Shown here in pieces: positions 16,924-35,604 of a stretch of 36,048 bases of DNA. Both the position numbers and the translations under genes were made by a program. The notes beneath the pieces were generated by a model. That model did not search any database. It had not been told where the DNA came from and saw only the letters and a list, made by a program, of their open reading frames with translations. The DNA is from Corallochytrium limacisporum Hawaii (taxonomy: Eukaryota; Protista; Pluriformea), in NCBI GenBank assembly GCA_002811645.1, contig PDIP01000046.1, positions 144,753-180,800 on the forward strand, in the 5' to 3' direction. Position 1 is the stretch's first letter, and the number at the start of each line of letters is the position of its first letter.

Positions 16924-18750
16924 ATGAACTTTTCAGATCCGTACGTGATTGCCGGCTCTGCAAGTGCTGGTCTGGTGACGTATCTTGTCATCAGATCTAT
17001 TTCCCGCCGGCAGAGGGGCCTAGCTGCGCTTGCCAAAGGAGCCAAGCGCCGTGCGGAACGCGACCTTGCCCGTGGACGAGCTCACAATGTGATCAACGAG
17101 GCCTACAAGGAGGTAGGCCTCACCCGTGATCGGGAAGTAGAACTGTGCTATATGACTGCTAGCAAAATGCTTGAGGCTATGGCATCTGGCAAGACCACGT
17201 CGCTGGAGCTGGTGACGGCGCATTGCCGACGCGCGCTGCAAGCCGGAGAAGAGCTTGGCACCAACGCTGGTGAGTACTTTGAAGAAGCGATTGCTGCGGC
17301 ACGAGAAGCGGACAAAGAGCGCACAGCCGGCTGGAACTCGAAGGAGCGACCGTTGCTTGGACTGCCAATGTCAGTGAAGGATCAGTTCGAACAGAAAGGT
17401 GCGGACTGTGGTAGTGGTCTTGCGTGCCGTGCTGGGGACATCATTGAGAAGGACGGTTACCAAGTGGGTAGCCTGCGCAAGCGTGGAGCCATTCCCTTTG
17501 TGCGAACCAATGTACCGCAATTGCTGATGATGCCAGAGACCATAGGTACCTGTTGGGGCAAGTGCGTCTCGCCCTGGAACCGTAAGAGGTCGCCCGGTGG
17601 GTCATCTGGCGGCGAAGGGGCGTTGATTGCAGCTCGTGCTAGTCCCGTCGGTATCGGTACGGATTATGGCGGCAGTATCCGCATACCTGCCATGAATTCC
17701 GGCCTGTTCGGCTTCAAGCCTACTCCCCAGCGCCTGCCAAATCCTGGTCTCCAGGAGCCACACCGTGGCTTCATAAGTGGTAACGAAAGTATTCCGGACA
17801 GTTACGGACCCTTGGCTCGTGATGCGGAAGACTTGGAGCTCATCATGGGCAGTTGGCTGCGTGAGGGTGCTAATGATCCCGCCAGCGGGGGGGATGCATA
17901 CGTTCCCATGATTCCTTGGGACTATGAAAAAGCCAAATCTACAGCAGAGGGTGACAGCAGGCGCGGAAAGCTTAGGATTGGGTATTACTTTACTGATGAT
18001 TGGTTTGCCCAACACAAGGCCGGTCGCCGTGCCGTGCGGGAGGCGGCTGAGGCACTGAAGAAGGCTGGTCACGAGCTGATCGAAATGGATGGTCCCGTGA
18101 CGTCAGTGACTGAGATTGCGAAACTTGGTTATAGCTTGAGGGCCGGCAATAATCTAAGATATGCTTACAAGGCTCTAGAGGGAGAACCCATGCACAGCAA
18201 TTTCCGGGGTCTCGAGAAGTATGCTAACACTCCCGAGTTTCTCCGTCCCTTGTTGGTATCGATTCTGAGGGCCACTGGCTCGGTTCGCCAGTCGGTTCTC
18301 ATGAGTGCTCTAGGTGATAAGAAGGCTTCGGACTTCTGGGACCTCGTTGCTGAGCGGAAGCGTATTCAGCAGACGTGGGCCAAGACTGTTGTGGATGACC
18401 TAAATCTTGATTGCCTGCTCGTTCCCGGTGTCCCCTGCCAAGTCTACAATATCGGATCAACGGCTAAACTGAGCCCTTCAATGTCATATACTATGACATT
18501 CAACATTCTCGCTTGGGCTGCTGGCTCTGTGCCAATCACGACAGTGCGGGACGACGAGCAGGTATACGAAGATCCTGATCACAATGATTCCATAACTTTA
18601 GCTGCAAAGGCGAATGCACGGGACTCCGCGGGTATGCCCGTCGGTGTACAGATCGCGGCTCCTCCGTACCAGGATGAGTTGGTCTTGCGGGTCATGAAAG
18701 ATCTACGTGATCAGAGCCCCTTCACCGCGCTGCCACAGCAAGGTATCTGA
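16924..18750 (+). CDS. Fatty-acid amide hydrolase (FAAH)-like amidase-signature enzyme, paralog 1
   Basis: N-terminal TM helix. Catalytic Lys in PLLGLPMSVKD, GAIPFVRTNVPQ, GGSSGGEGAL (cis-Ser), GTDYGGSIRIPA (nucleophile Ser), GFKPT, GMPVGVQI. 608 aa. Confidence 0.92.
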   Translation: MNFSDPYVIAGSASAGLVTYLVIRSISRRQRGLAALAKGAKRRAERDLARGRAHNVINEAYKEVGLTRDREVELCYMTASKMLEAMASGKTTSLELVTAHCRRALQAGEELGTNAGEYFEEAIAAAREADKERTAGWNSKERPLLGLPMSVKDQFEQKGADCGSGLACRAGDIIEKDGYQVGSLRKRGAIPFVRTNVPQLLMMPETIGTCWGKCVSPWNRKRSPGGSSGGEGALIAARASPVGIGTDYGGSIRIPAMNSGLFGFKPTPQRLPNPGLQEPHRGFISGNESIPDSYGPLARDAEDLELIMGSWLREGANDPASGGDAYVPMIPWDYEKAKSTAEGDSRRGKLRIGYYFTDDWFAQHKAGRRAVREAAEALKKAGHELIEMDGPVTSVTEIAKLGYSLRAGNNLRYAYKALEGEPMHSNFRGLEKYANTPEFLRPLLVSILRATGSVRQSVLMSALGDKKASDFWDLVAERKRIQQTWAKTVVDDLNLDCLLVPGVPCQVYNIGSTAKLSPSMSYTMTFNILAWAAGSVPITTVRDDEQVYEDPDHNDSITLAAKANARDSAGMPVGVQIAAPPYQDELVLRVMKDLRDQSPFTALPQQGI

Positions 18751-19404
18751 GATGGCCGGGTTTAGAGGAATGTGTGCTCTATTAGCACGAGCGACTGGCA
18801 TCAACATCGTTTTGAGGAGTGCTGCAATACGTCAGCTGACCCCGGCGCGACATTCTTATCGGTCTCTTGGCATCAACTTCCGTGGCTTCGCGAAGACTGT
18901 GCACCGCCGCAGCCGGCGAGCGAGGATAGATGCCTCCCTCCATTCTGAACACCGACATCTCTCCTCATGCAGCCGCTTCACAGTCCCACCTCATTCATGC
19001 AGCGCCACCAGCCCATGTGCACCAAGTGAAAAATTCCTGAAAACTTCCCACGTAAACGCGCGTCAGCAATTTTTGATTTTGTCATCACGGAGGAAGTTCT
19101 GGTGGTCGGTGCCGTAAAGTGTAGATTAAAACCCAACTCCTCCCCGATAGCTACTCTCTCGTTAAATTAAAATATCGTACTCTGCGCTTCAACAACATCA
19201 AAGATAGTTATGGCTGCAAAATTTTCGACACCAGGTATAAATTACTCTCAATGTGGCAGAATATCCCGAGGTTCATGAGGCATGATCACCCACCAGTGTG
19301 AACTCGATCGATTCACTTGCATGGGTTGGTAGCATGTATACCGAACGGTTTGGCAGATATTTTTATAGATTGAAGTTGATCAAACTCTGCTAAAGCGACA
19401 CGTT

Positions 19405-20367
19405 ATGGCCAAACCTTTCGATTCCGTTCTCGGTGCGATTGGCAACACGCCACTGGTTCGGCTTGATCGGTTGACCAAACATTATGGTTGCCAGGGCACC
19501 ATTCTGGCCAAGCTGGATCACCTCAATCCGGGATTCTCCAAAAAGGACCGCGCTGCCCTTGGGGTTGTCGAAGCCGCTGAGCAGGATGGCACCCTGTGTC
19601 CCGGTCAAACAGTCGTTGAGCTAACCAGTGGAAACATGGGAACTGGCCTGGCCATTGTTTGTGGTATCAAGGGCTATCCTTTTGTTGCAGTGATGTCGAA
19701 AGGCAATTCACCAGAACGTGCGCGAATGATGGCAGCACTGGGAGCAGAGGTTGTCTTGGTGGATCAGCTACCTGACAGTCGCCCCGGTGAGGTATCCGGG
19801 GCTGATCTGGCTGAGGTTGACCGCGTCGCGACCCAGCTAACAAAAGACCGCAACGCGTTTCGGGCCGACCAATTTCGTCGGGCGGGAAATCCCGGCGCTC
19901 ATGAACATACTACTGGGCCAGAGCTTTGGAAGCAATCTGGCGGAAGAATTGACGCGTTTTGTGATTTTGTCGGGTCAGGGGGCACCTTGGCAGGCACGTC
20001 AAAGTACCTGCGCTCACAAAGCCCGCATGTGAAATTCTACCCTATTGAGCCGGTTGGTGCCGCGGTACTCGCTGGCGAAGATGCTGTTCATCCTGACCAC
20101 CCGATCCAAGGTGGTGGTTATGCCATGGCTGATCTAGATTTTCTGCGGGGCATGAACTGGGATGGCTATCTTCAGGTGGACGGTGCGCGAGCTCGACGGG
20201 TCGCCCGTGATTTGGCCCGGCTCGAGGGCATATTTGCCGGCTTCTCAGCAGGCGCCAACGTTGCCGGAGCAATCGAGCTTTTGAAAGGGGATCACAAGGG
20301 CCAAACTGTTGCGGTTATCATTTGTGATTCCGGTTTGAAGTATCTTTCAACCGATCTCTTTGAATGA
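19405..20367 (+). CDS. Cysteine synthase family PLP enzyme (fold type II), bacterial-type NPGFSKKDR variant
   Basis: IGNTPLVRL, AKLDHLNPGFSKKDR (PLP lysine), ELTSGNMG, QF...NP.AH..TTGPELWKQ, GSGGTLAG, EGIFAGFSAGAN, CDSGLKYLST. Compact 320 aa with no targeting peptide and no CBS domains. Confidence 0.9.
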   Translation: MAKPFDSVLGAIGNTPLVRLDRLTKHYGCQGTILAKLDHLNPGFSKKDRAALGVVEAAEQDGTLCPGQTVVELTSGNMGTGLAIVCGIKGYPFVAVMSKGNSPERARMMAALGAEVVLVDQLPDSRPGEVSGADLAEVDRVATQLTKDRNAFRADQFRRAGNPGAHEHTTGPELWKQSGGRIDAFCDFVGSGGTLAGTSKYLRSQSPHVKFYPIEPVGAAVLAGEDAVHPDHPIQGGGYAMADLDFLRGMNWDGYLQVDGARARRVARDLARLEGIFAGFSAGANVAGAIELLKGDHKGQTVAVIICDSGLKYLSTDLFE

Positions 20368-20700
20368 TGGGCGTCCATGGAACGCTGTCCCCCCCGAAGT
20401 GGGCCGTTAGTAAAAAACTGTTACACCTAACAAAATACTAATTTGAATTAGAACCAAAAAGAAAAATCTTCAAATCCGCACTGAACTCCTTTTGGTTCGC
20501 TTCAAACAGCCTTCCCTCATTTATAAAACCTCCGTTTGGGTGTTTTTTTTTTTTTTTTCTGGGTTTAAACCTGCCTGCCCTCTCTCTCTAAACCACCCCA
20601 CCCCCCGGGGGTTCTCTCCTTCGCCTCCCCCTTTTTTTAATTGCGACGGCCGACCCACCGTGGATAGTTAATCGCCCGGGTAGCAAGGTTGTGCGAGTTA

Positions 20701-20721
20701 GTGTGTGTGTGTGTGTGTGTG
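20701..20721. repeat. (GT)10 microsatellite
   Basis: Read directly. A T16 tract lies nearby at 20543-20558. Confidence 0.9.
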
Positions 20722-22006
20722 GGGTGGTGGTGGTTTAGCTCTCTGCGACTTAGATTCTACGGCATTTCCCCAGGGTAATTAATTTTTTCTTCACAATTGT
20801 CTGTCGCCTGTTTTTCCCTCGGTCGGCGCAACCTGTGCAGTCGTGGAGGTCTACTCATATCACCTATCACCTGGGTAGATTTCCTATCAACCCCCTGAGG
20901 CGCTGTTAATAGGAAAGTATGCGCAGTCTCGAGAAACAGTTGCTTCCACGTCCAAATCCAGGGGGACGGGAGACGGTTAATAGTACGGGGTAATGGAATC
21001 ATTCACTTCGATCCTGGACAGATTCCCCTGCAGCTCAGTAGAGTGGGGTCAGTGGGTACGCACGTTGAAGAGGGGGTGCGCTGAGCGGATGCCACTGAGT
21101 GTCTGGCGTATGTATATATGTACAATGAACTGTTAAAACCTGGTGTAGATCTCAGGCGTTCGTGCATCTGACTAGGAAGGTGACCGCTCTTTTTGGCAAG
21201 AAGCAAAAGGCCCACCGCGCAAAAAAAGAAAAGGGACAGTGAGGAAACCTGCCGAGAACGGTTACCACCTGTACCACTTTTACGAACTCCAGGACTTTGG
21301 TATTAGCGTGGCCGGCGTGTCGTCCATACTAAGTTCTGACTGTCCAAGGGGTTACATCGGACCGGTAGACTCTTGGAGCGCAGCGGTCGTGACCCCCCCC
21401 CGGGGGGGCCAAAAGAAAGGAAAGCAGGGAAAATTAACTGCGAAGGAAGAATTTCGCCGGATTGGTTTGTATGGCGGTCTTGCGGTGTTGGTGGCGCGTT
21501 TCAATTGTTTTAGTATTGGGTAGGCCAGAAGACGAAACACTTCGGTTCTCATTCATATCTGCTTAAAAAAAAAGCCAAAGAAATGCCCCGTACCATTGCG
21601 TAACTACGGGACCATGTCATCATCAGGAGGAGGAGATCTACAGCGAACTTGAAGGTGAAGGTAAATTCGCGCTCGACTCGGCCAAGGACGAGGGATTGTA
21701 TGGATGATTGTATGGCAGTGGACAGGTTGGGGAAGAGGACACTCGAAGTGCAGCTGCAGCGAATCTGTGTCGCAGCACAGATGTCGCATCAGTGGATGCT
21801 CACAGACAGGTGGAAGGGGATATCGGTCGTCGGGTTGGTGCTCTAGCGAGCTCTTGAATGAGACGATATGTCAAATATCAATGAGAGAACTGGATTGGTA
21901 CCTATTTAAAGGAATCAGGGCAAGAGATCATTCATAGGGCTGGTGGTGAGCTAGGTATAAACGACACAGAAGTCTGACCACATCAGACACGCCAAGGTAA
22001 AGAAAC

Positions 22007-23833
22007 ATGAATTTTGCAGATCCGTACGTGATTGTGGCCTCCATTGGAGCTGGACTGGTGACCTACTATGTCATCCGATCAATGTCCGCCAGGGCCAAAG
22101 CCCAGGCTATCGCATCCAAAGGCGCCAAACGCCGTGCGGAACGTGATGAGGCTCGCGGCAGAGCTCACAAGGTGATCAACGAGGTTTACAGAGAGGTCGG
22201 CCTGACCCGTGAGCGAGAAGAAGAATTGTGCTTTATGACTGCGACGCAGATGCTTGCGGCCATGGCGTCTGGCAAGACCACTTCGCTGGAACTGGTGACG
22301 GCGCACTGTCGTCGAGCACTGCAGGCTGGAGAGGAGCTTGGCACAAACGCCGGCGAGCATTTTGAAGAGGCGATCGCTGCGGCACGGGAGGCGGACAAAG
22401 AGCGTAAGGCCGGATGGAACTCGGATGAGCGTCCGCTGCTTGGACTACCCATGTCCGTGAAGGACCAATTCGAACAGAGAGGTGCGGACTGCGGCAGTGG
22501 TCTTGCATGTCGCGCCGGCGACATTGTCAAGGAAGACGGATACCAAGTGGGAAGCCTGCGGAAGCGTGGAGCCATTCCGTTTGTGCGTACCAATGTGCCA
22601 CAAATGTTGATGATGCCAAATGCAATGGGCACCATTTGGGGCACGTGTATGAACCCTTGGAACCGCAAGCGATCGCCTGGTGGCTCCTCTGGTGGTGAGG
22701 GTGCGTTGATTTCATCGCGCGCTAGTCCGGTCGGCATTGGCACTGACATTGGTGGCAGTGTACGTATCCCTGCTCTGTGCTGTGGTCTTTTTGGCTTCAA
22801 GCCGACCCCCCAGCGCCTGCCGAATCCCGGTCTGCAGGAGCCTGCCCAAGGTCTCATCAGTGGCAATGAAAGTGTTCCGGACAGCTACGGGCCCTTGGCG
22901 CGTGATGCCGAAGACTTAGAGCTCATCATGGGCAACTGGCTGCGGGAAGGGGCTACTGATCCTGCCTGCGGAGGTGATTCGTATGTTCCCATGGTTCCCT
23001 GGGACTATGAAAAGGCTAAGCCCAGCACGAAAGGCGACAGCAGGCGCGGAAAGTTGAGGATTGGATACTACGTAAACGATGATTGGTTCGCTCAACACAA
23101 GGCTGGCCGCCGTGCGGTGCGAGAGGCAGTTGAGGCACTGAAGAAGGCCGGTCATGAGCTGATTGAGATGGATGGACCTGTGACGTCTGTGACTGAGATT
23201 GCTTCGCTGATCTACGGTTTATTATTCGCTGACAAGATGACCGGTGCGATGAGGGCTCTGGAAGGAGAAGAGTTGTGCAGTGGATACGCGGGACTTCGAT
23301 TGGCTGCTGGTGTTCCCGAGTTTCTGCGGCCTGCCTTGGCTTCTCTTCTAAATGCCATTGGTTGGGGTCGTATGGCAATTTTGCTGAAGGCCCTTGGTGC
23401 TCGCAGCGCGTCGGACTTTTGGGTGGCAGTTGCAGAGCGAAAGCGCATCCAACGGCAGTGGGAGAAGACTGTCATGGTTGATCTGAAGCTTGACTGCGTG
23501 CTCGCACCTGGAATTGCCTCTCAGGTCTATCTGAACGACATCAGCGGCGACTTGGGTCCAACGGTGTCATACACCTTCGTGTACAACTTCCTCGCATGGC
23601 CTTGCGGTAACGTACCTATTACTCTTGTACGTGATAATGAGCAAGTCTACGAAGATCCTGATCACAATGACCCCATGACTTGGGCAGCGAAGGCCAATGC
23701 GAAGGACTCGGCAGGCATGCCCGTCGGTGTACAAATCGCTGCGCCACCCTACCAGGACGAGTTGGTCTTCCGGGTAATGAAAGATCTACGTAATCAAATT
23801 TCCTTCACTGCTCTCCCACAGCAAGGAATCTAA
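22007..23833 (+). CDS. FAAH-like amidase, paralog 2
   Basis: Same amidase-signature motifs (SVKD, GGSSGG, GTDIGGS). 608 aa, colinear with paralog 1. Confidence 0.92.
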   Translation: MNFADPYVIVASIGAGLVTYYVIRSMSARAKAQAIASKGAKRRAERDEARGRAHKVINEVYREVGLTREREEELCFMTATQMLAAMASGKTTSLELVTAHCRRALQAGEELGTNAGEHFEEAIAAAREADKERKAGWNSDERPLLGLPMSVKDQFEQRGADCGSGLACRAGDIVKEDGYQVGSLRKRGAIPFVRTNVPQMLMMPNAMGTIWGTCMNPWNRKRSPGGSSGGEGALISSRASPVGIGTDIGGSVRIPALCCGLFGFKPTPQRLPNPGLQEPAQGLISGNESVPDSYGPLARDAEDLELIMGNWLREGATDPACGGDSYVPMVPWDYEKAKPSTKGDSRRGKLRIGYYVNDDWFAQHKAGRRAVREAVEALKKAGHELIEMDGPVTSVTEIASLIYGLLFADKMTGAMRALEGEELCSGYAGLRLAAGVPEFLRPALASLLNAIGWGRMAILLKALGARSASDFWVAVAERKRIQRQWEKTVMVDLKLDCVLAPGIASQVYLNDISGDLGPTVSYTFVYNFLAWPCGNVPITLVRDNEQVYEDPDHNDPMTWAAKANAKDSAGMPVGVQIAAPPYQDELVFRVMKDLRNQISFTALPQQGI

Positions 23834-25836
23834 GAGGGCCATGAAGATGGCTGTAACATATCCGATAATGTCAGGGAGTGGTGAAGCATATTCATGTGGC
23901 TCTGACTTGACACCCAATGATGTCCAGAAAAGGAACCCTCTACTACACCGATACACCTAACATAGTCTTAAACATGGATTACTCTCATGTTTCCTTTGGA
24001 ATTCGGAATATATTATCATCCCATTGGTCCTTTGCGTCCCGAATGTGCGCCTGGTGGGCGGACAAATGATGCGACAGGCTGATCAAGAAAAGGGAACAGA
24101 TATTGAAGGAACGGTGGCTGTGCCTTAGCGCACGCAATGTCCAGAGGGCGGGGGTTTATCTCTCCCCTATCCTCTGACCGATCCCCCCCCCCCAAGCTGG
24201 TGACCCCCTACCCCCCGCGGGGAGCGGGCGCGGGGGTCCTGGTTCCGCACCCTTCACTCCTAGGGCACAACAATCCTATCGGGGGCCTAAATATTAGGGA
24301 AAGTTCACAGAACTGGTATGGTAAGCCCCTGCACCTTCGACCAAGAAAGGGGGTTTCGTGCAGTCCTTGGTCCCCCTACCCCACCCAGCTCAAGGACGGG
24401 CCCTGCAGCGGGCAAAGCAGAGAAGGAAAACAAGGAAAAAAAAAAGTTCTTAGCTGCCATGTAATCAGAAACGTTTCTGTTTCTTTTTTCAATCGCAAAA
24501 GGAAGGCGGCGAATTGATCATTTTTGTGGGTAAGTGTCCGGACCGATCAAAAGAAAGAAAAAGTGAAGGCTCAGCGCAGAGGACCTCGGGGTGGACATAT
24601 TCAATTGTGTGCACCGAGTACGCCCGAGGGAAACAAGTGACGGGTGTAAACGTTCTCGAGTGTGTTTGTACGTCTGCCCGTCCACGGCTGCCTCCCTTAT
24701 CGGTTGGTTGCTGCTGACACCGGATACGTTCGTTGGGTCCGGTTGCGCGGTGCAGTAGTGCTAGTGAGAGCCAGCAGGTGTGCCCGAGGAGCCGTACCCC
24801 GGGGGCTGGGAAGAAGGGAATTTCACGGGAACTGAGAGTGAAAAGACGGGCTCGCAAGCAAACGTCGAAAAAGAGGACGGGGCTGGAAGGCCTTTCGAAA
24901 GTTGTAGCAAGTAAGCACGCTTCGCTACCACGGACCAAGGAGCACACCAGCAAAGCCAGTGGGGTACCGGTGGTACCTTTCGAGACGAGATTACGCATGT
25001 GCCCGATAACAAAGAAGCAGCAGGCAAAAAAAGAAAGTCAACTAAACGGCGGTAGGGCTTCCGAGGTTATGGTACGGGGTCTCCGTTGGGCACGATGACT
25101 GCTAGAGCGGGACCAACGAATGCGCAGAACAGTCTCCCAATTTTACCACCACCCCGACATTAGAGCATCATGAGTGGGAGAGTAAAGCTCGTGGTGCCTG
25201 AGTAGGTCCTATCGCACCGGCTCTAATTACTTTGTGGACACTAAGATGTACAATGAAGTGATAACTATAAGCTACGACCAACATAAGTTGAGAATTTGTG
25301 TATCCAACAAGTGCTCGTCTGCTGTGAACTGTGAGAATCTGGGGCAACGCGCATCGCAGGAAAATGTTTGCGCACTCGTACCGTCCCAATGGTGGGCAAC
25401 CGCACGCACCTGGTGCTTTCACCTCACATTCTCAAGCCCTTGCTTCCCCTGCGATCAGTGGTCACTATAAAGGCCTGCACTTTCGACCGAAGAGGGATGG
25501 GGAGGCGACCCAGGGCGGCAATTCGTATTCATTTTGACCCTGGGTGGAGGGGTCCCGTGCACCCCACTAGGCCCCCGGCGGAGGGGGAAGGGAAAGGCAG
25601 GAGGATACAAGTTGCTGACTGTCGGCGGGCCCTCTGCGCGGCGACTGATCCGTCCCCGATTGTTTGTCTAATGTGCCTAACGCTAAAACCTTAAGTAAGG
25701 CAGCGTTGCCCACAGAAAAAATTATGAGTTGAAGTCTATTTACAGCAATGAGCTTAGGAGATCACGGATGGAATTAATGGTCTCTGCCCCAGCTGCATGG
25801 AAGTGTGATCAAATCAACCGCACCAATAGGCAAAAG

Positions 25837-27663
25837 ATGAATTTTGCAGATCCGTACGTGATTGTGGCCTCCATTGGAGCTGGACTGGTGACCTACTATG
25901 TCATCCGATCAATGTCCGCCAGGGCCAAAGCCCAGGCTATCGCATCCAAAGGCGCCAAACGCCGTGCGGAACGTGATGAGGCTCGCGGCAGAGCTCACAA
26001 GGTGATCAACGAGGTTTACAGAGAGGTCGGCCTGACCCGTGAGCGAGAAGAAGAATTGTGCTTTATGACTGCGACGCAGATGCTTGCGGCCATGGCGTCT
26101 GGCAAGACCACTTCGCTGGAACTGGTGACGGCGCACTGTCGTCGAGCACTGCAGGCTGGAGAGGAGCTTGGCACAAACGCCGGCGAGCATTTTGAAGAGG
26201 CGATCGCTGCGGCACGGGAGGCGGACAAAGAGCGTAAGGCCGGATGGAACTCGGATGAGCGTCCGCTGCTTGGACTACCCATGTCCGTGAAGGACCAATT
26301 CGAACAGAGAGGTGCGGACTGCGGCAGTGGTCTTGCATGTCGCGCCGGCGACATTGTCAAGGAAGACGGATACCAAGTGGGAAGCCTGCGGAAGCGTGGA
26401 GCCATTCCGTTTGTGCGTACCAATGTTCCGCAGGTGTTGTGCATGCCAGAGACCATGGGCAGCTGCTGGGGTTTGTGTGTCTCACCTTGGAACCGAAAGC
26501 GGTCGCCTGGTGGTTCCTCTGGTGGTGAGGGTGCGTTGATTTCATCGCGCGCTAGTCCGGTCGGCATTGGCACTGACATTGGTGGTAGTATACGCATCCC
26601 TTCCATGTGCTCTGGGTTGTTCGGCCTCAAGCCGACTCCCCAGCGTATGCCGAATCCCGGTCTGCAGGAGCCTCACCGTGGCCTCATCAGCGGCAACGAC
26701 GGTATTCCGGACAGCTACGGGCCCATGGCGCGTGATGCCGAAGACTTGGAGCTCATCATGGGCAACTGGCTACGGGAAGGGGCTACTGATCCTGCCTGCG
26801 GAGGTGACGCGTATGTACCCATGATTCCCTGGGACTATGGAAAAGCCAAATCATCCGCGAAAGGCGATAGCAACCGTGGAAAACTAAGGATCGGATACTA
26901 CTTCAGCGATGATTGGTTTGCTCAACACAAGGCTGGCCGCCGTGCCGTACGAGAGGCAGCTGAGGCGCTGAAGAAGGCCGGTCACGAGATGATTGAGATG
27001 GATGGACCCGTCACGCCTGTCACTGATATTGTGCGGCTGACCTACAGCATGTTTGCTGGTGATAATTTTCGCTGGGCGTATAAGGCCCTGGATGGAGAAC
27101 CTTGGCATGACAGTTTCTTCGGTCTGCTTCTTAATGCCAATATGCCCGAATTCCTCCGTCCCATCGTGCGTGGGATGTTGAATGCGATCGGTTGGAGTCG
27201 CCTGGCAATGTTTACGAGCGCCCTTGGAGCCAAGACGGCCTCGGAGTATTGGGATGTTATTGCTGAGCGGAAGCGCATCCAGCGGACATGGGCCAAGACT
27301 GTTATGACTGACCTGAAACTTGACTGTCTGCTTGTACCCGGTATTGGTTGCCAAGTCTACGGTATCGGATCCAGCGCGGATCTGGCACCTGCATGCTCCT
27401 ACACCTTTGTTTTCAACTTGCTTTCCTGGGCTGCTGGTACGATACCCATCACGACGGTGCGGGACGATGAGCAGGTCTACGAAGATTCTGCCCACAATGA
27501 CCCAATCACATGGGCCGCCAAGGCTAACGCGAAGGCCTCTGCTGGTATGCCCGTCGGTGTGCAGATCGCTGCCCCTCCGTACCAGGAAGAGTTGGTCTTA
27601 CGCGCAATGAAGGATCTACGCGACCATATTCCCTTCACAGCACTGCCACCGCAAGGAATCTGA
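25837..27663 (+). CDS. FAAH-like amidase, paralog 3
   Basis: Same motifs. Start placed at ATG 25837 (MNFADP) by homology with the other paralogs, giving 608 aa. Confidence 0.92.
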   Translation: MNFADPYVIVASIGAGLVTYYVIRSMSARAKAQAIASKGAKRRAERDEARGRAHKVINEVYREVGLTREREEELCFMTATQMLAAMASGKTTSLELVTAHCRRALQAGEELGTNAGEHFEEAIAAAREADKERKAGWNSDERPLLGLPMSVKDQFEQRGADCGSGLACRAGDIVKEDGYQVGSLRKRGAIPFVRTNVPQVLCMPETMGSCWGLCVSPWNRKRSPGGSSGGEGALISSRASPVGIGTDIGGSIRIPSMCSGLFGLKPTPQRMPNPGLQEPHRGLISGNDGIPDSYGPMARDAEDLELIMGNWLREGATDPACGGDAYVPMIPWDYGKAKSSAKGDSNRGKLRIGYYFSDDWFAQHKAGRRAVREAAEALKKAGHEMIEMDGPVTPVTDIVRLTYSMFAGDNFRWAYKALDGEPWHDSFFGLLLNANMPEFLRPIVRGMLNAIGWSRLAMFTSALGAKTASEYWDVIAERKRIQRTWAKTVMTDLKLDCLLVPGIGCQVYGIGSSADLAPACSYTFVFNLLSWAAGTIPITTVRDDEQVYEDSAHNDPITWAAKANAKASAGMPVGVQIAAPPYQEELVLRAMKDLRDHIPFTALPPQGI

Positions 27664-29354: not shown

Positions 29355-30131
29355 TTTAGTGAGGAGTGCGTTTGCTACGTTGTTCAAACCTGTATCGTGA
29401 ATGTTCAGCTTCTCGCACTGGAGTCAGCGGGTGATTCTGGTGTTGATACTAAGATTCCCATTTGCGTTCTTAGTTCGGAGAGTTTGAGTAATTTAAATAC
29501 CAGCAAGATCGATTAAATCCAACTATAGAAACTGGTGCAGAGTTGGAGGCCACAATGTCTCTTACCAGTTTGCTGCCGCGGCTGCGCTGGATTGCCGCTG
29601 GGAGAGTGCTTTCCCCCTTTTTCTCTCGTCCCCCTCTCACTTTGTCTGCACACTTTCCCCGGGGCCGATTGCACCGCTGTTTGCGCGGAACCGAAGTGTC
29701 ACAGGAAACCAGTGGTGCGTGCGCAGCGGAGAAGAGTGTATCGCTTTGCTTCGCACACGGGGCCTAAGAGAAAAAAATGGCTTTTGGTGCAAGAGTGGGC
29801 ACCTGCTACCATTACGAGCCCTCAACTGGGGAACCCGTAGTCCGAAGAAATTGGCCCGCAAGGGAGGGGGAGGACGCGCATGTGTGGCAGTGAGGTATTT
29901 TTTTTTTCGCTTTGGTCCTCAACACGGCGGCCCAGGCCCTGTGGTACCACTGCCGCCTGATTTGCTGATGTTGAAAAATCACTTGCAAGGGAGTGGTATG
30001 TTAACAGTTTCTGCTGTTGATCTCGCGGAGTACACGGTGCGTGGAAATTGATAGTGGGTTGGTACTCGATAATGAAAGCATCGGACACAATTCAAAGGCA
30101 GGTTCACCTATCCGTCAACCAATTACGATGA

Positions 30132-30890
30132 AATTGTAAGATTCAGCCCAGTCCAACGGACACGGTTTATATGGAAAAGGCGGTCCGCTATGTAGAATCG
30201 GTTGCGCTCGATATGTGATCGTGGTTCTCTGTGCCGCAATTGTCTTTCCAGTAGTACATCTCTAAGACTGTAATGACCGATAAAACACATCCAGAGCGTG
30301 CAGCATGGTCTGAAATAAGGACAACATGATTTAGAGCGCACCGACGAACAAACCACTTCGCCGTCGTGCTCAACTTATTCCGACGGTTTGTCAAATTGCA
30401 ATACCTAAGTGACTACCCACCGCCATATTCGCAAATCAACAACGAAGGAGATTACCATCAAAGGGGGGTTATCAAAGTGTGTCAGCGTTCCGTGGCAGTG
30501 GCCCACAAATGAAGGATTCAGCACACAGTTCGATTTATAAGGAAAAGGCCGTCCGTTTTGTCGAATCCGTTACGCTTTGTATGTGGGGGTTCTCTGTGCC
30601 GCAATTGTCTTTCCAGTAGTAGTCCATCTCTAAGACTTTAATCAGGGGACCCACAAAATACACGCAGAGCGTGAAGCATGGTTTGAAATCAGGAAAACAT
30701 GATGAAGAGCACACCAACCAGTAAACCTCTTCGCCGCCGCGCTCAATTTACTACGACGGCTCCTCAAATTGGAATACCTAAGTGACTACACACCGCCATA
30801 TTCGCAAATCAACAACGAAAAAGATTGCCATCAAGGGGTTTATCGTTGTGCCAAAGCTACGTCAGCGTTTTGTGCCAGGGGCCCGCAAAC
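30132..30890. repeat. Degenerate tandem duplication, two copies of ~370 bp (possible pseudogene relic)
   Basis: Shared blocks appear in both copies (about 30132-30507 and 30508-30890): GATTCAGC, GGAAAAGGC, GGTTCTCTGTGCCGCAATTGTCTTTCCAGTAGTA and AATACCTAAGTGACTAC.CACCGCCATATTCGCAAATCAACAACGAA. Confidence 0.88.
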
Positions 30891-32607
30891 CCGGAACCGC
30901 ACACCACAAAAATCGGACAAAGTAGCGTAATTTACATGAGTTCGGGTGATTTGTCAGAAGCCCCAGCTCTCTCTCACAGTGTTTCAGTTTCCTATTGGCG
31001 GCTCGCGGCCCACCGGTTCTGCCATATAACCCCATGGTACCGTTTATATACTGCAACCAATTGTCTCGAGAGCGCGAGAATCCAACCACAAAGTCTGCAC
31101 AGAAAACATTCGCGGGGTAATTCTACACATGTGCATGCAAGCCCTGTTCGCTTGTTTGGTCTTAGGTCCTATCTCATTTTGGAAGGCATCCTCCTTGGTT
31201 ACGTAGGTAGTACCCTTCGGCAACATATCCCTAGCTTGTTTTCAGTTGATTGAAGAAAAATCCTTAAGATGCGGACACGAGCCAGTTCGTAGTGGCCGCA
31301 CTATCGGCAGGGCGAACTGAGTATCTGAGACTTTTTGTTTGTGTTTACAAAAATAGAGAAGGGGAGGTGGGGGGATTGGGAAGTGGACAGCGAACAATAA
31401 AAATATACGGCAATTTTTGAAATCTGTGTGGTCTAGCTGTGCCACCCCCTAAACCCTTGTAAGGGTAAGCGCCCTCGGAGTCCCTGTGTACGTTGGGTAT
31501 TGTTTTCGGCCCACTTCCAACACCCGGCCCGTCGCACCCCGGAAGGGTTCTAATTTAGCAGCGCAAGGTGGGTCCTTTCTTTCCCGTCAGGTCTGACTGC
31601 ATAACTGGTTTGCACCGGCGGCGGTCCGAACGGCTCAGTGCACTCAAGTACCGAGACGAGCCTGCGGAATGGGGTCCGCTGGGCTCGCATGTTCCCATTT
31701 TCCCTACCAACCTCTCTAACCAGCCAGGACATCACAAGGATATGCCACAACGACCGGCCTGGGTCACATCCATAGACAGCGAAGTTTGGATGGGTTGTGG
31801 AACCTTTTTTCTTCACTGTCTAGGGTCTTTGGGTGTACGTGGAACGCGTCTGTAATATATGGTGAAGGCCTTCTTTCGGGTGAAAGGGGAGGGGAAGAGG
31901 GAATACGCCTGCTACTCTGCACAGAGAGAAAGCTGCGTGGAGTCCCTGCTTCCACAAATCCGCCCCCGAATGCCAGAGAATACCACCGTCCTTATCTTGT
32001 CGCATGGAATTGAATAAAATGAGTACAATAGTACCACTACTGAAAGAGATTTTCGTGCCCTGGGAGAGTTAGAGAAAGATATCCCTGGCGATCGAGATAG
32101 CACATCGTGCGCACTCCTGATCCTGGGGCAGATCCCATTTTTGCTTGGATCCACATTCCCCGTGTAGTTTTGGCGCGGAGGTCAAATCAGTTAGTTGCTC
32201 TCGAGGAAATGATTACTGATCAACACTGTTGGACAGCAGACAATACCATCCAAGCACATGCCGAGTATCTCACAAGAACGGTTCCATGCAGACAGAGAAA
32301 GGATACCACAGTACGCTCGTCTGTATCACACTCCCTTACCATTCATGCTTTGCCCCTTCCTGCAACTATTCTTACCTAAGGCGGGTCGATCATTTAGTAT
32401 GGTTCTTGTCTACACGTTTCACGAGATTGCCAACTAAGGACACTCAGAAAAAGAGCCTCTAAGGTATATAGAGATTGTGCTATAACCTACCACACAGGGA
32501 AGACCTGAGATCACACCATGCTGATTCGCCAACAGCACAGCCAGGTACACAAGAGCACAAAATCCTGTGTGGGTGCGAGTGTGTAAATTTGTCAGCAGAA
32601 TAGCAAA

Positions 32608-35604
32608 ATGCCAAGCTACAAAATGATTTTTGGAGCCGCTGCGGTCCTTATTGGGATTCAGGATGTTTTGGCACAGGATACCGGGCCGGTAAATCCGATT
32701 CGTGTGGACCAGCGCTGTCTAGTGATTCAGCGGTCCAACAATTCAAACAGCAAATGGCTGCACTTCCCAACACCGGAAAGTTTCATTGCAGACATCGATG
32801 GCACTGGTATTCCCTACGATGTGTATGTATATACGGCTGATGGATCAGCCTACCTGTGGACACAGGACTTCACCGACGACAGAAGTGGTGAGCCCTTTGC
32901 CGGTGTACGGAATTGGGAGTACCTTCCCGAAGTGAACCTGACCACATATTTGGAAGTGGAAGCAAACCACGGCCGCTACAGCTGTATTTTTAAGACCCCA
33001 ACAATCTTCTTTGTGGGTTGTGGTGACAACCAACGATGCACTGGGGAGGTGGACTTTGACGCTCATGCACGTCACCACGATGGCTTGCTGGCATATCGGG
33101 CCAAATACCAAGCTCGTTGGGTGCACATGGGATGCATCTGGCAAACTGGTGTAACTTGTGAAGAAGCAGCGACGGTGGAGCAGCTAAGAAGCGTTGTTAT
33201 GACCGACTACGGCCATGATGAGGTGGCTCTGGGTATGATTGATAAGGACATGGAACCATGGGATTTCGCTACCTACGCAACTCCATTCATCACCCCAGCA
33301 GTTCTGGATCCCGATCTGGATGCAGAACCAATCCTGGTCAACACAGAAGGTCAGATCTTGGCTCACATGCTGAATCGGGAAGTATGGTTCAATAGCCAGA
33401 TCGTGCGAGTACAGGAATTGTATCTGAACGGCGTCTTCCCTCCCTTCGTCCACGACAGCATTGTACTTTCCTGGGGTGTCTGGCTACAATGGGCGCTTGA
33501 CGGCTGGATGGTCCAGGGTGTGCGCCGTGTTCACATTTTCCAGTTTGCTTGGTACTATGATGACTGGCCAAACCATTTGAAATACCAAGACAAGTTCAGT
33601 GATCAGAATATGCAGCGTTTGACTGACATGCTACAGTTCCGCCACGTAGATGGCGAGGACCGAAACTGCTACAATGTTCGTGAAGTATATTTTGAAGATG
33701 GTGTTCGCAAACGCGGAAACTTCTATGAACCCTGTGAAGACGTTGACATGGTGTACAATGCTGAGAATCAGCCCACTACCTACGACCCGGACCAGCTCAA
33801 CCAGCCCATGTCCTTTGTGGATTTCCGCACATGCAATGTGACCGGGACCATGGTGTATGAAGACCCATCAGAGTCTGGTTATGTAAACCGCCAGCTGAAG
33901 TACGGCCTGGAGATCAGTGTCAACCCAAGCCCCACTAATGTGGCTCGCTGCAAGTTCGTTCCCGTCACCAATTTGGGTCGTTTTCTGCCAGACGTTGAGG
34001 GAACTTTGGCATTGTCTGAAAACAAAGATCTCTATACCACCAACTACGGTTTTGATAAAACCACATGGATGCCCGCTCCAGCATCAGGCACCACGCACAC
34101 TCTCTACTCAGATCCTTCCAAGAGTCCCTGTTTGACCAGTGAGTGGAGTGAGGATTTCGTTGAGGGCGCCTGCCCTGATGTTTGTGACAATCTCCTCGTT
34201 CGAACGCGGATCCGGACCATTACCAATAAGGGTAACGGTGAGTGTCCAGAGCTTGAGAAAGAGGAGGAGTGTCCGGAACCCCCTCACTGCACAGACTTTG
34301 ACCTCGATGATGTGCAAAACGATGAGGATAATTGTCCCAGTGTACCCAACCCTGAACAAGATGATTGGAACAACAATGGTGTTGGTGATGCCTGTGATGA
34401 CGCTGACGACGACGGTGTAATGGACGATGAGGACAACTGTGTCAATGTGGCAAATGTGGACCAAGCTGACTACGATGATGATGGGGTGGGTGATGCATGC
34501 GATGATACTGACGAAGATGGCATCATGGACGACGAAGATAATTGTGTCAATGTGGCAAATGCAGATCAAGCTGACTACAACGATGACGGAGTGGGTGATG
34601 TTTGCGACGATACTGACGAGGACGGCGTCATGGACGATGAGGACAACTGTTTCAACGTGACAAATACAGACCAAGCCGACTACAACGATGATGGAGTCGG
34701 CGATGCCTGCGACGATTCTGACGAAGATGGCATCATGGACGACGAAGATAATTGTGTCAATGTGGCAAATGCAGATCAAGCTGACTACAACGATGACGGA
34801 GTGGGTGATGTTTGCGACGATACTGACGAGGACGGCGTCATGGACGATGAGGACAACTGTTTCAACGTGACAAATACAGACCAAGCCGACTACAACGATG
34901 ATGGAGTCGGCGATGCCTGCGACGATTCTGACGAAGATGGCATCATGGACGACGAAGATAATTGTGTCAATGTGGCAAATGCAGATCAAGCTGACTACAA
35001 CGATGACGGAGTGGGTGATGTTTGCGACGATACTGACGAGGATGGCGTCATGGACGATGAGGACAACTGTGTCAATGTGGCAAATGTGAACCAAACTGAC
35101 TACGATGATGATGGAGTGGGTGATGCCTGCGACGATTCTGACGATGATGGAGTCATGGATAACGAGGACAATTGTTCTGACGTATTCAACCCGGATCAGG
35201 CTGACTACGACGAGGATGGATTGGGTGATGTCTGCGATGAAACTGACGGACATGGCCCAGAGGATGGGGTGGGTTTCGAGACTGAGGATGAAGTATCTAC
35301 GGGGTCGCCCGAGACCCCTACAATTTTTCCCACCAACAATAATCAGAATCTTGGTGGTGACACCCGCGGGACTCCGTCAATCGACGGTGAAGACACCTCA
35401 GATGGCGGAGCCGGTGACCTCCAGGGTACTGGAGACAATGGAGGCAGCGGAAGCGGTGAGAATCAGGCAATTCTCATCGGCAGTATTGTCGGTGGTGTGG
35501 CAATTCTGTGTTTAATTGTTTTGAGTATCACAATCTGTAAACGAACTGGGCCGTCTGATGTCGAGTCCAACACTGACTCAAACCTTGAATCAAATGTGGT
35601 CTAG
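32608..35604 (+). CDS. Type I membrane protein: signal peptide, Agd3-like ectodomain, TSP1/spondin-like module, 9 thrombospondin type-3 Ca-binding repeats, TM helix, 21-aa tail
   Basis: Signal peptide MPSYKMIFGAAAVLIGIQDVLA. TSP1-like CLTSEWS...C...C...RTRIRTI...ECPELEKEEEC (34129-34290). DxDxDGxxDxxDNC...NxDQxDxxxDGVGDxC repeats. TM helix ILIGSIVGGVAILCLIVLSITIC. The Agd3 resemblance comes from recalled motifs (see findings). Confidence 0.85.
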   Translation: MPSYKMIFGAAAVLIGIQDVLAQDTGPVNPIRVDQRCLVIQRSNNSNSKWLHFPTPESFIADIDGTGIPYDVYVYTADGSAYLWTQDFTDDRSGEPFAGVRNWEYLPEVNLTTYLEVEANHGRYSCIFKTPTIFFVGCGDNQRCTGEVDFDAHARHHDGLLAYRAKYQARWVHMGCIWQTGVTCEEAATVEQLRSVVMTDYGHDEVALGMIDKDMEPWDFATYATPFITPAVLDPDLDAEPILVNTEGQILAHMLNREVWFNSQIVRVQELYLNGVFPPFVHDSIVLSWGVWLQWALDGWMVQGVRRVHIFQFAWYYDDWPNHLKYQDKFSDQNMQRLTDMLQFRHVDGEDRNCYNVREVYFEDGVRKRGNFYEPCEDVDMVYNAENQPTTYDPDQLNQPMSFVDFRTCNVTGTMVYEDPSESGYVNRQLKYGLEISVNPSPTNVARCKFVPVTNLGRFLPDVEGTLALSENKDLYTTNYGFDKTTWMPAPASGTTHTLYSDPSKSPCLTSEWSEDFVEGACPDVCDNLLVRTRIRTITNKGNGECPELEKEEECPEPPHCTDFDLDDVQNDEDNCPSVPNPEQDDWNNNGVGDACDDADDDGVMDDEDNCVNVANVDQADYDDDGVGDACDDTDEDGIMDDEDNCVNVANADQADYNDDGVGDVCDDTDEDGVMDDEDNCFNVTNTDQADYNDDGVGDACDDSDEDGIMDDEDNCVNVANADQADYNDDGVGDVCDDTDEDGVMDDEDNCFNVTNTDQADYNDDGVGDACDDSDEDGIMDDEDNCVNVANADQADYNDDGVGDVCDDTDEDGVMDDEDNCVNVANVNQTDYDDDGVGDACDDSDDDGVMDNEDNCSDVFNPDQADYDEDGLGDVCDETDGHGPEDGVGFETEDEVSTGSPETPTIFPTNNNQNLGGDTRGTPSIDGEDTSDGGAGDLQGTGDNGGSGSGENQAILIGSIVGGVAILCLIVLSITICKRTGPSDVESNTDSNLESNVV
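34291..35235 (+). repeat. Coding minisatellite: nine 105-bp units (35-aa TSP3 repeats) with an exact 210-bp higher-order repeat
   Basis: ACGAAGATGGCATCATGGACGACGAAGATAATTG starts at 34511, 34721 and 34931. The 210-bp periodicity is exact over about 34508-35042. Confidence 0.95.

Follow-up and report, generated by a model that had tools for sequence, protein, structure and literature searches.

Can the scaffold of the deacetylase Agd3 persist at the cell surface once its catalytic barrel is gone? This question is raised by a gene in a 36,048-nucleotide stretch of Corallochytrium limacisporum Hawaii DNA (hereafter the window), which lies on contig C227 of the 24.1 Mb, 286-contig genome that was searched. 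A single unbroken open reading frame (ORF) of 998 codons on the forward strand (32608–35604) encodes a protein of 998 aa. In order, this protein comprises a signal peptide, a head of ~480 aa, a degenerate thrombospondin type 1 (TSP1) repeat, ~10 thrombospondin type 3 (TSP3) repeats, an acidic stalk, a transmembrane (TM) helix and a 21-aa tail; it is a type I membrane protein. An initial sequence-only reading of positions 32713–34104 (aa 36–499 of the ORF) had proposed an Agd3-family scaffold that misses its deacetylase domain and is reused as a membrane-anchored TSP1/TSP3 surface protein. Our analysis makes it highly probable, for structure and evolution alike, that the head consists of an Agd3-type CBM87 module and C-terminal β-sandwich from which the CE18 barrel has been excised. 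The explanation as a whole, in which this barrel-less head on its TSP stalk would act as a non-catalytic lectin, is the one that we favour with some reserve.

The head and its missing barrel

The strings that had been read as Agd3-like are all present, in the order given: CLVIQR (aa 37–42), GTGIPYDV (65–72), HGRYSCI (121–127), LLAYRAKYQARWV (160–172), VEQL (190–193), VQELYL (268–273), WLQWALDGWMVQGVRRVHI (292–310), YYDDW (316–320), FSDQNMQRLTDMLQFR (330–345), EISVN (435–439), CKFVPVT (448–454), TNYGFDKTTWM (478–488) and THTL (496–499, ending at nucleotide 34104). Taken by itself, the window protein gave no match for its head in Pfam, NCBIfam or the PDB (phmmer). A word-index homologue search of the head returned only the protein itself and, with a profile, one paralogue more, and an ESM Atlas feature search yielded nothing usable. 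The single sequence being silent in Pfam, NCBIfam and the PDB, the Agd3 signal requires a profile of paralogues. A profile built from seven heads of this genome matched Agd3 (6nwz_A) with an E-value of 1.2e-6 over Agd3 residues ~189–376, and the match stops at G-H-R-R-V-N-L-N-T-Q-I, directly before D377/D378. Weak Pfam CBM87_Agd3 matches were found in two of the seven heads, and an eighth paralogue, P0007, scores above the PF25116 cut-off (30.4 vs 27.6 bits). When the N-terminal part of the heads was compared with the full-length Agd3 genes of the same genome by hhalign, head positions 1–284 aligned with 23–255 of the full-length gene L011 (98%, E 1.6e-13). The profile search suggested by the sequence-only reading was thus negative for the window sequence alone and positive for the paralogue profile and hhalign; as far as sequence comparison can tell, CBM87 (PF25116) membership is a property of the family and not of the window sequence by itself. 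On these profile and fold matches, the N-terminal strand and CBM87-like α/β/α domain extend over aa ~31–313 (32698–33546, forward strand) and end at GVRRVHI.

The C-terminal part of the head (aa 393–500, 33784–34107, forward strand) carries the motifs DQL..FRTC, NVTGT, GLEISV, CKFVPVTNL and YGFDKTTWMP, and six β-strands are predicted in it. A first hhalign comparison with eight full-length genes placed it just after the barrel, although weakly (P 0.004, probability 8%). In a larger test, in which eight head C-modules were compared with the post-barrel regions of 25 sequences from Corallochytrium, chytrids and metagenomes, the match rose to 95.6% (E 1.3e-8, 79 columns). FRTC–NVTGT paired with RD..C.P.VT, GLEISV with V.I.S, CKFVPVTNL with C.IP.TG, and YGFDKTTWMP with YG.D...W. 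The real score of 54.9 compares with values of at most 14.5 in 100 column shuffles and 11.4 for the reversed alignment. The Pfam model of the Agd3 C-terminal domain, PF25117, found no match anywhere in the genome; it misses even the full-length Agd3 genes and is therefore too insensitive to serve as one. In the profile alignment, the post-barrel helix D.L...F.R..C falls at aa 393–409, so that its first placement, at aa 330–354, is not supported.

To model the head, AlphaFold2 was given the seven heads as sole input, template-free and without Agd3 sequences. The top PDB match of the model in Foldseek was Agd3 (6NWZ, E 6.9e-7). VIA-align superimposed residues 1–474 of the model on Agd3 142–802 with a Z-score of 22.8 and a root mean square deviation of 4.1 Å over 334 residues, while the runner-up fold reached a Z-score of 15.4 with 205 residues aligned. 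In Agd3, CBM87 accounts for 224 residues (141–364) and the C-terminal sandwich for residues 733–806 (PMC7229062). The sandwich of Agd3 is completed by an N-terminal strand, residues 146–149. At least 110 of the 334 aligned residues must therefore lie outside CBM87 and, since the alignment reaches the end of the Agd3 C-terminal domain, both accessory domains are predicted in the mutual arrangement that they have in Agd3, and the barrel is missing. The sequence-only reading had anticipated this result for an AlphaFold and Foldseek comparison.

Could this likeness reflect a shared generic fold, a GATase1/ThuA-like domain joined to a common β-sandwich, rather than descent? Generic GATase1/ThuA-like folds match the head model with Z-scores of 10–12, many GATase1-like folds fall within 10–15, and the similarity to this fold class has been described for Agd3 itself (PMC7229062). 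Several results weigh against our structural assignment. The head model is of moderate quality (predicted local distance difference test, pLDDT, 58.6; predicted template modelling score 0.69), with low confidence limited to residues 282–374 (pLDDT <50), and the window protein alone stays under the Pfam CBM87 threshold. Moreover, the C-module folded alone (pLDDT 63) matches generic glycosidase C-terminal β-sandwiches (Z ≤5.3), with Agd3 outside its top 50 fold matches. Sequence profiles, however, single out Agd3 and CBM87. When 1.84 billion representative proteins were searched exhaustively with the profile, all 33 non-paralogue matches aligned to the CBM87 part of the profile only, and the scanned matches that are long enough carry the Agd3_CE domain. 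Both domains are furthermore co-linear with Agd3, and the two-domain arrangement fits Agd3 alone. We therefore consider mere fold similarity extremely improbable and retain common descent: the Agd3-family scaffold that had been proposed is borne out for both CBM87 and the C-terminal β-sandwich.

The CE18 domain of Agd3 that separates these two modules is a distorted (β/α)7 barrel of ~370 residues (365–733), with the catalytic motifs CM1 (D377/D378), CM2 (H510/H514, HxxxH), CM3 (R613) and CM4 (M666/H668, M-x-H) (PMC7229062). The head has neither this barrel nor its catalytic motifs. The Agd3_CE model (PF25115) has no match in any head at E-values up to 10, and it matches at least 16 genes elsewhere in the genome. 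Only ~80 residues separate the G.RR strand from the C-module in the window protein, and ~45 in five paralogues; the linker is ~35 aa longer in the window protein and its closest paralogue, L008, than in these other five. This linker or insert, at the place of the Agd3 barrel, is delimited by low pLDDT and the alignment gap pattern to aa 314–392 (33547–33783, forward strand). Neither HxxxH nor M-x-H occurs in aa 300–520, where the only histidines are at positions 309, 323, 346 and 497; the sole HxxxH of aa 1–520, at aa 153, lies in the CBM87-like part, within an insert that is not conserved. The deacetylase domain is thus missing, as had been claimed, and no intact catalytic fold with metal ligands is predicted for aa 315–500. 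The aspartate pair at 318–319 had been taken for the one that opens the barrel, an identification that finds no support: the pair is DT in the closest paralogue and has no counterpart in the five others. We also considered whether the linker (aa 311–392) could be a vestige of the barrel. This is unsupported, as its hhalign score against the CE domain (15.3) falls below values reached by shuffles (up to 21.3).

A barrel-less family among full-length enzymes

The genome search with the head identified six more loci. The closest, the full-length paralogue L008 (44% identity), encodes 1136 aa, which include about six TSP1 repeats as well as a TM helix; the other five are more distant. Throughout this seven-head set, a signal peptide and the head are followed by TSP1 repeats or by an acidic linker alone, and then by a hydrophobic C-terminal anchor. 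The alignment of the seven heads contains 26 invariant positions. Three members (L004, L006 and L007) consist of the head and a TM anchor without TSP modules. Two further barrel-less proteins, P0012 and P0022 (Clim_evm55s243 and Clim_evm56s243; 441 and 480 aa), have no TM anchor, so that secretion is probable. At its C-terminus, P0022 has a Cys-rich tail that resembles those of the full-length CE18 genes L018, L030 and L036. Altogether, at least 10 barrel-less genes are present in C. limacisporum.

These numbers bear on a simpler explanation, namely that the barrel is missing from the window gene through mis-assembly, an annotation error or the decay of a pseudogene. The junction itself (~nt 33540–33600) lies outside the independent contigs of run X1, which would leave room for such an error. 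Against this, the 998 codons are uninterrupted, and the identical 998-aa protein is present in a public protein collection via EukProt. The barrel-less layout recurs, with intact frames and the 26 invariant residues, at no fewer than 10 loci on different contigs, and run X1, which represents a slightly different strain, has contigs inside the ORF only. An artefact or a dead gene is accordingly very hard to credit.

To place the barrel-less genes among their relatives, a quick IQ-TREE tree was computed from 54 rows and 256 columns of the CBM87 region, with L036, L038 and parts of L030 excluded on account of N-masked or atypical frames. A single clade unites eight heads with P0012 and P0022; its value in the SH-like approximate likelihood ratio test is 96. 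In this quick tree, no full-length lineage was singled out as the sister of the barrel-less clade. A separate short protein, L019 (C174:26375–26950, a 404-aa ORF), has a CBM87 Pfam match of 62 bits and a hydrophobic C-terminal segment but no CE18 motifs. It sits on a long branch outside the barrel-less clade and may therefore represent an independent loss of the barrel.

Beyond Corallochytrium, the search of 1.84 billion proteins found the whole barrel-less head in Corallochytrium proteins only. A Pfam scan of ten matches detected the CE18 domain in all eight that came from other organisms, and the sources that were looked up were Syssomonas (a fragment), chytrid fungi and metagenomes. The most economical reading would be that the barrel was deleted once in the lineage of Corallochytrium, with duplication and a shuffling of stalk modules afterwards.

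The same genome retains the enzymes, in a large expansion of apparently intact Agd3-type CE18 genes. At least 16 open frames (727–1139 aa) exceed the Pfam cut-off for Agd3_CE, several of them in tandem arrays of 2–3 (loci L011–L018 and L030–L038, on contigs C178, C7, C50, C240, C277, C283, C247, C46, C31, C72, C264 and C88). Most of the full-length genes keep CM1 (G.RR...Q[IV]DD), CM2 (HT.[ST]H) and CM4 (M[FY]H), and many of these Agd3-type deacetylases are apparently active. Their C-termini vary between a TM anchor, a glycosylphosphatidylinositol-like tail, a Cys-rich tail and a poly-GN tail.

In addition, at least six genes of GH114, the Ega3-type endo-α-1,4-galactosaminidase family, exceed the Pfam cut-off (C22:271045–271692, C207:8445–9089, C234:26537–27184, C176:374457–375101, C29:32472–33239 and C29:48663–49385). 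GH114 consistently co-occurs with agd3 (PMC7229062). The GH114 genes suggest that Corallochytrium handles a galactosamine (GalN)-containing polymer. No match to GH135/Sph3 was found in the genome, but the control of that search was likewise silent, so that this result is uninformative. The genome survey that the sequence-only reading had called for therefore returned barrel-less paralogues, CE18 genes and Ega3-type genes alike.

The stalk, the anchor and the surroundings of the gene

The N-terminal signal peptide, MPSYKMIFGAAAVLIGIQDVLAQ (aa 1–23, 32608–32676, forward strand), was read from the translation as a hydrophobic N-terminus followed by AQ|D, and all paralogues have an equivalent signal-peptide-like N-terminus. 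Directly behind the head lies a degenerate TSP1 repeat (CLTSEWSEDF..., aa 508–561, 34129–34290, forward strand). Its Pfam TSP1_spondin match (PF19028 / PF00090 test) remains below threshold, with an E-value of 0.013 and 16.2 bits against a cut-off of 41; the motif has degenerated to SEWSEDF. Paralogues carry canonical C..SEWSEWS.C TSP1 repeats at this position.

The following array of ~10 calcium-binding-type TSP3 repeats (aa ~566–883, 34303–35256, forward strand) scores over its Pfam cut-off, with TSP_3 (PF02412) matching in 10 stretches (E 1.1e-50, 169.4 bits vs a cut-off of 25). Tandem Repeats Finder resolves positions 34376–35256 into 8.4 copies of a 105-nt period, or 4.0 copies of a 210-nt period at 90% match. 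Four copies of a two-repeat unit at ~90% identity indicate, at the level of sequence, a recent tandem expansion of the array. Antisense to the array runs a long ORF of 381 aa (34108–35253), which is spurious and due to the repeat composition.

The array is followed by an acidic, Gly/Ser/Thr-rich low-complexity stalk (aa 884–953, 35257–35466, forward strand), a TM helix, AILIGSIVGGVAILCLIVLSITIC (aa 954–977, 35467–35538, forward strand), with KR and a polar tail after it, and a short cytoplasmic tail with the stop codon (aa 978–998, 35539–35604, forward strand), all read from the translation. Equivalents of the TM helix are present in the paralogues. The membrane-anchored TSP1/TSP3 protein of the sequence-only reading thus stands as regards the TSP3 array and, by translation, the TM helix, whereas its TSP1 part is a degenerate, sub-threshold repeat.

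The neighbours of the gene within the window bear no relation to it and encode three amidases, a pyridoxal phosphate enzyme, a RhoGEF and a TPT-family transporter. The three amidase genes (16924–27663) are paralogous to each other (Pfam Amidase, E 1e-82 to 1e-88) and have a PALP gene (19405–20364) in between. The ~3 kb upstream of the gene (29700–32600) are without a long ORF.

Putative function and relation to known systems

What could a CBM87 head without a deacetylase do? The isolated CBM87 of Agd3 binds galactosaminogalactan (GAG) and α-1,4-linked N-acetylgalactosamine (GalNAc) oligomers, with W292, W344 and D242 being important (PMC7229062). When the 6NWZ alignment is mapped on the heads, an aromatic residue equivalent to W344 is found in seven of seven (F280 in the window protein) and one equivalent to W292 in four of seven (F227), both assignments being alignment-dependent. 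We therefore propose a mechanism in which the CBM87 cleft of the head would bind the hexosamine polymer (α-1,4-GalNAc/GalN-like) on which the CE18 and GH114 enzymes of Corallochytrium itself act. The TSP1-like module, the ~ten calcium-binding TSP3 repeats and the acidic stalk would hold the head off the membrane as a calcium-stiffened stalk. The bound polymer could then tether the membrane to the wall or matrix, mediate cell–cell or cell–substrate adhesion, or allow the polymer to be sensed. Ligand binding, the identity of the ligand and the adhesive or receptor role are what we infer from this set of modules. That the head is a non-catalytic lectin, adhesin or matrix receptor for a hexosamine polymer, and hence has a glycan-binding function, is in our estimate an evenly balanced proposition.

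A number of observations count against such a function. The equivalent of D242 is not conserved across the heads (G175 in the window protein; again alignment-dependent). Together with a non-aromatic residue at the W292 position in three of the seven heads, this loss may mean that specificity, or binding itself, has changed. No polysaccharide genes lie nearby within the window, and the ligand polymer is a putative one in Corallochytrium. The evidence that the window gene is transcribed is weak as well: run X1, whose status as RNA is a guess, provides four short contigs, all within the ORF and none in its flanks.

The lost D242, the variable W292 position and the high divergence of the heads from CBM87, which escape Pfam as single sequences, could fit a head that keeps the Agd3 fold without sugar binding and serves in protein–protein contacts or as a structural cap, while the TSP modules do the binding. 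TSP1 and TSP3 modules are adhesive in animal proteins, which would be in line with this idea. However, L004, L006 and L007 carry the head on a TM anchor without any TSP modules, which marks the head as the functional unit that has been conserved. All seven heads retain the W344-equivalent aromatic, and the genome holds a large enzyme set for the presumed ligand. We thus regard a non-binding cap as unlikely.

A third possibility is that the heads regulate the maturation of the polymer, either by occupying or shielding parts of it against the full-length deacetylases and GH114 enzymes or by bringing these enzymes to the membrane. That the heads coexist with 16 or more full-length CE18 genes, of which several are TM-anchored, would suit such a role, as would the fact that the CBM of Agd3 positions the substrate for its catalytic domain (PMC7229062). 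On the other hand, nothing points to interaction or co-regulation, the genes are not linked within the window, and long stalks made of a TSP3 array and an acidic linker are better suited to reach out from the membrane than to regulate at it. Regulation of polymer maturation therefore strikes us as distinctly improbable, and a glycan-binding head on an extended stalk remains our preferred reading.

If this reading is true, Corallochytrium, a unicellular organism closely related to animals, has a polysaccharide-matrix adhesion system built from parts of carbohydrate-active enzymes (CAZymes). The reading implies that Corallochytrium makes and remodels an Agd3/Ega3-type hexosamine polymer, a type hitherto investigated chiefly in moulds and bacterial biofilms, and that it has surface proteins which grip this polymer and are joined to TSP1/TSP3 modules typical of the animal extracellular matrix, which would offer a testable handle on cell–matrix adhesion before animals. 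We put forward, tentatively and with less conviction, that barrel excision gave this unicellular holozoan a private family of matrix receptors, in which a GalN/GalNAc-polymer-binding head is combined with TSP1/TSP3 modules and an anchor. The head could, moreover, serve as a ready probe for GAG- or Pel-like polymers.

A search of the accessible literature found no paper that links Corallochytrium to GAG or Agd3 and none on CBM87 without CE18. In agreement with the sequence-only reading, it returned no description of the architecture. The Agd3 family and CAZyme-derived lectins are already known; the excision of the barrel and the fusion to TSP1, TSP3 and a TM anchor are new.

The closest known system is Agd3 of Aspergillus fumigatus (CE18 and CBM87, PDB 6NWZ; PMC7229062). 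Both proteins share the N-terminal strand and a CBM87 that ends in G.RR, the C-terminal β-sandwich, the arrangement of these domains, a secreted or extracellular location and an aromatic residue at the W344 position. Agd3 possesses the CE18 barrel (365–733) with D377/D378, H510/H514, R613 and M666/H668, as well as D242, all of which the head lacks. Conversely, the window protein differs from Agd3 in that its head is joined to TSP1, a TSP3 array and a TM anchor. Agd3 constructs without the accessory domains were reported to be unstable (PMC7229062), whereas Corallochytrium naturally has the accessory domains without the barrel. Under the matrix-receptor reading, this would possibly show, by an example from nature, that CBM87 and the C-terminal domain can fold and bind as a stand-alone unit.

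Full-length genes of the Agd3 type, in Corallochytrium itself (e.g. L011–L018 and L031–L037), in Syssomonas and in chytrid fungi, have a homologous CBM87 and post-barrel domain, and several are likewise TM-anchored or carry Cys-rich tails. They differ in keeping the barrel and its catalytic motifs, and the barrel-less genes form a separate clade.

On the side of the stalk, the window protein is reminiscent of animal thrombospondins and other TSP1–TSP3 matrix proteins, in which a TSP1-like module also precedes a calcium-binding TSP3 run. The EGF repeats and the C-terminal lectin-like domain of thrombospondins have no Pfam match in the window protein, and, unlike animal thrombospondins, it has a single-pass TM anchor and a head of CAZyme origin. 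MtsC (NF047638) and the Omp28-related selenoprotein (NF045500) are similar in their runs of TSP3 repeats only and are unrelated to the head; the NCBIfam scores of both, which come from the repeat array only, are below the cut-offs (217.6 vs 350 and 180.2 vs 200, respectively).

As an analogy only, chi-lectins such as YKL-40 represent a carbohydrate-active enzyme lineage that has turned into a non-catalytic glycan binder, with the barrel kept and the catalytic residues lost. In the head described here, in contrast, the barrel has been deleted and the accessory domains have been kept. It would thus be a natural case of an enzyme becoming a lectin through deletion of the whole catalytic domain with both flanking accessory domains retained, a route that differs from the usual loss of catalytic residues.

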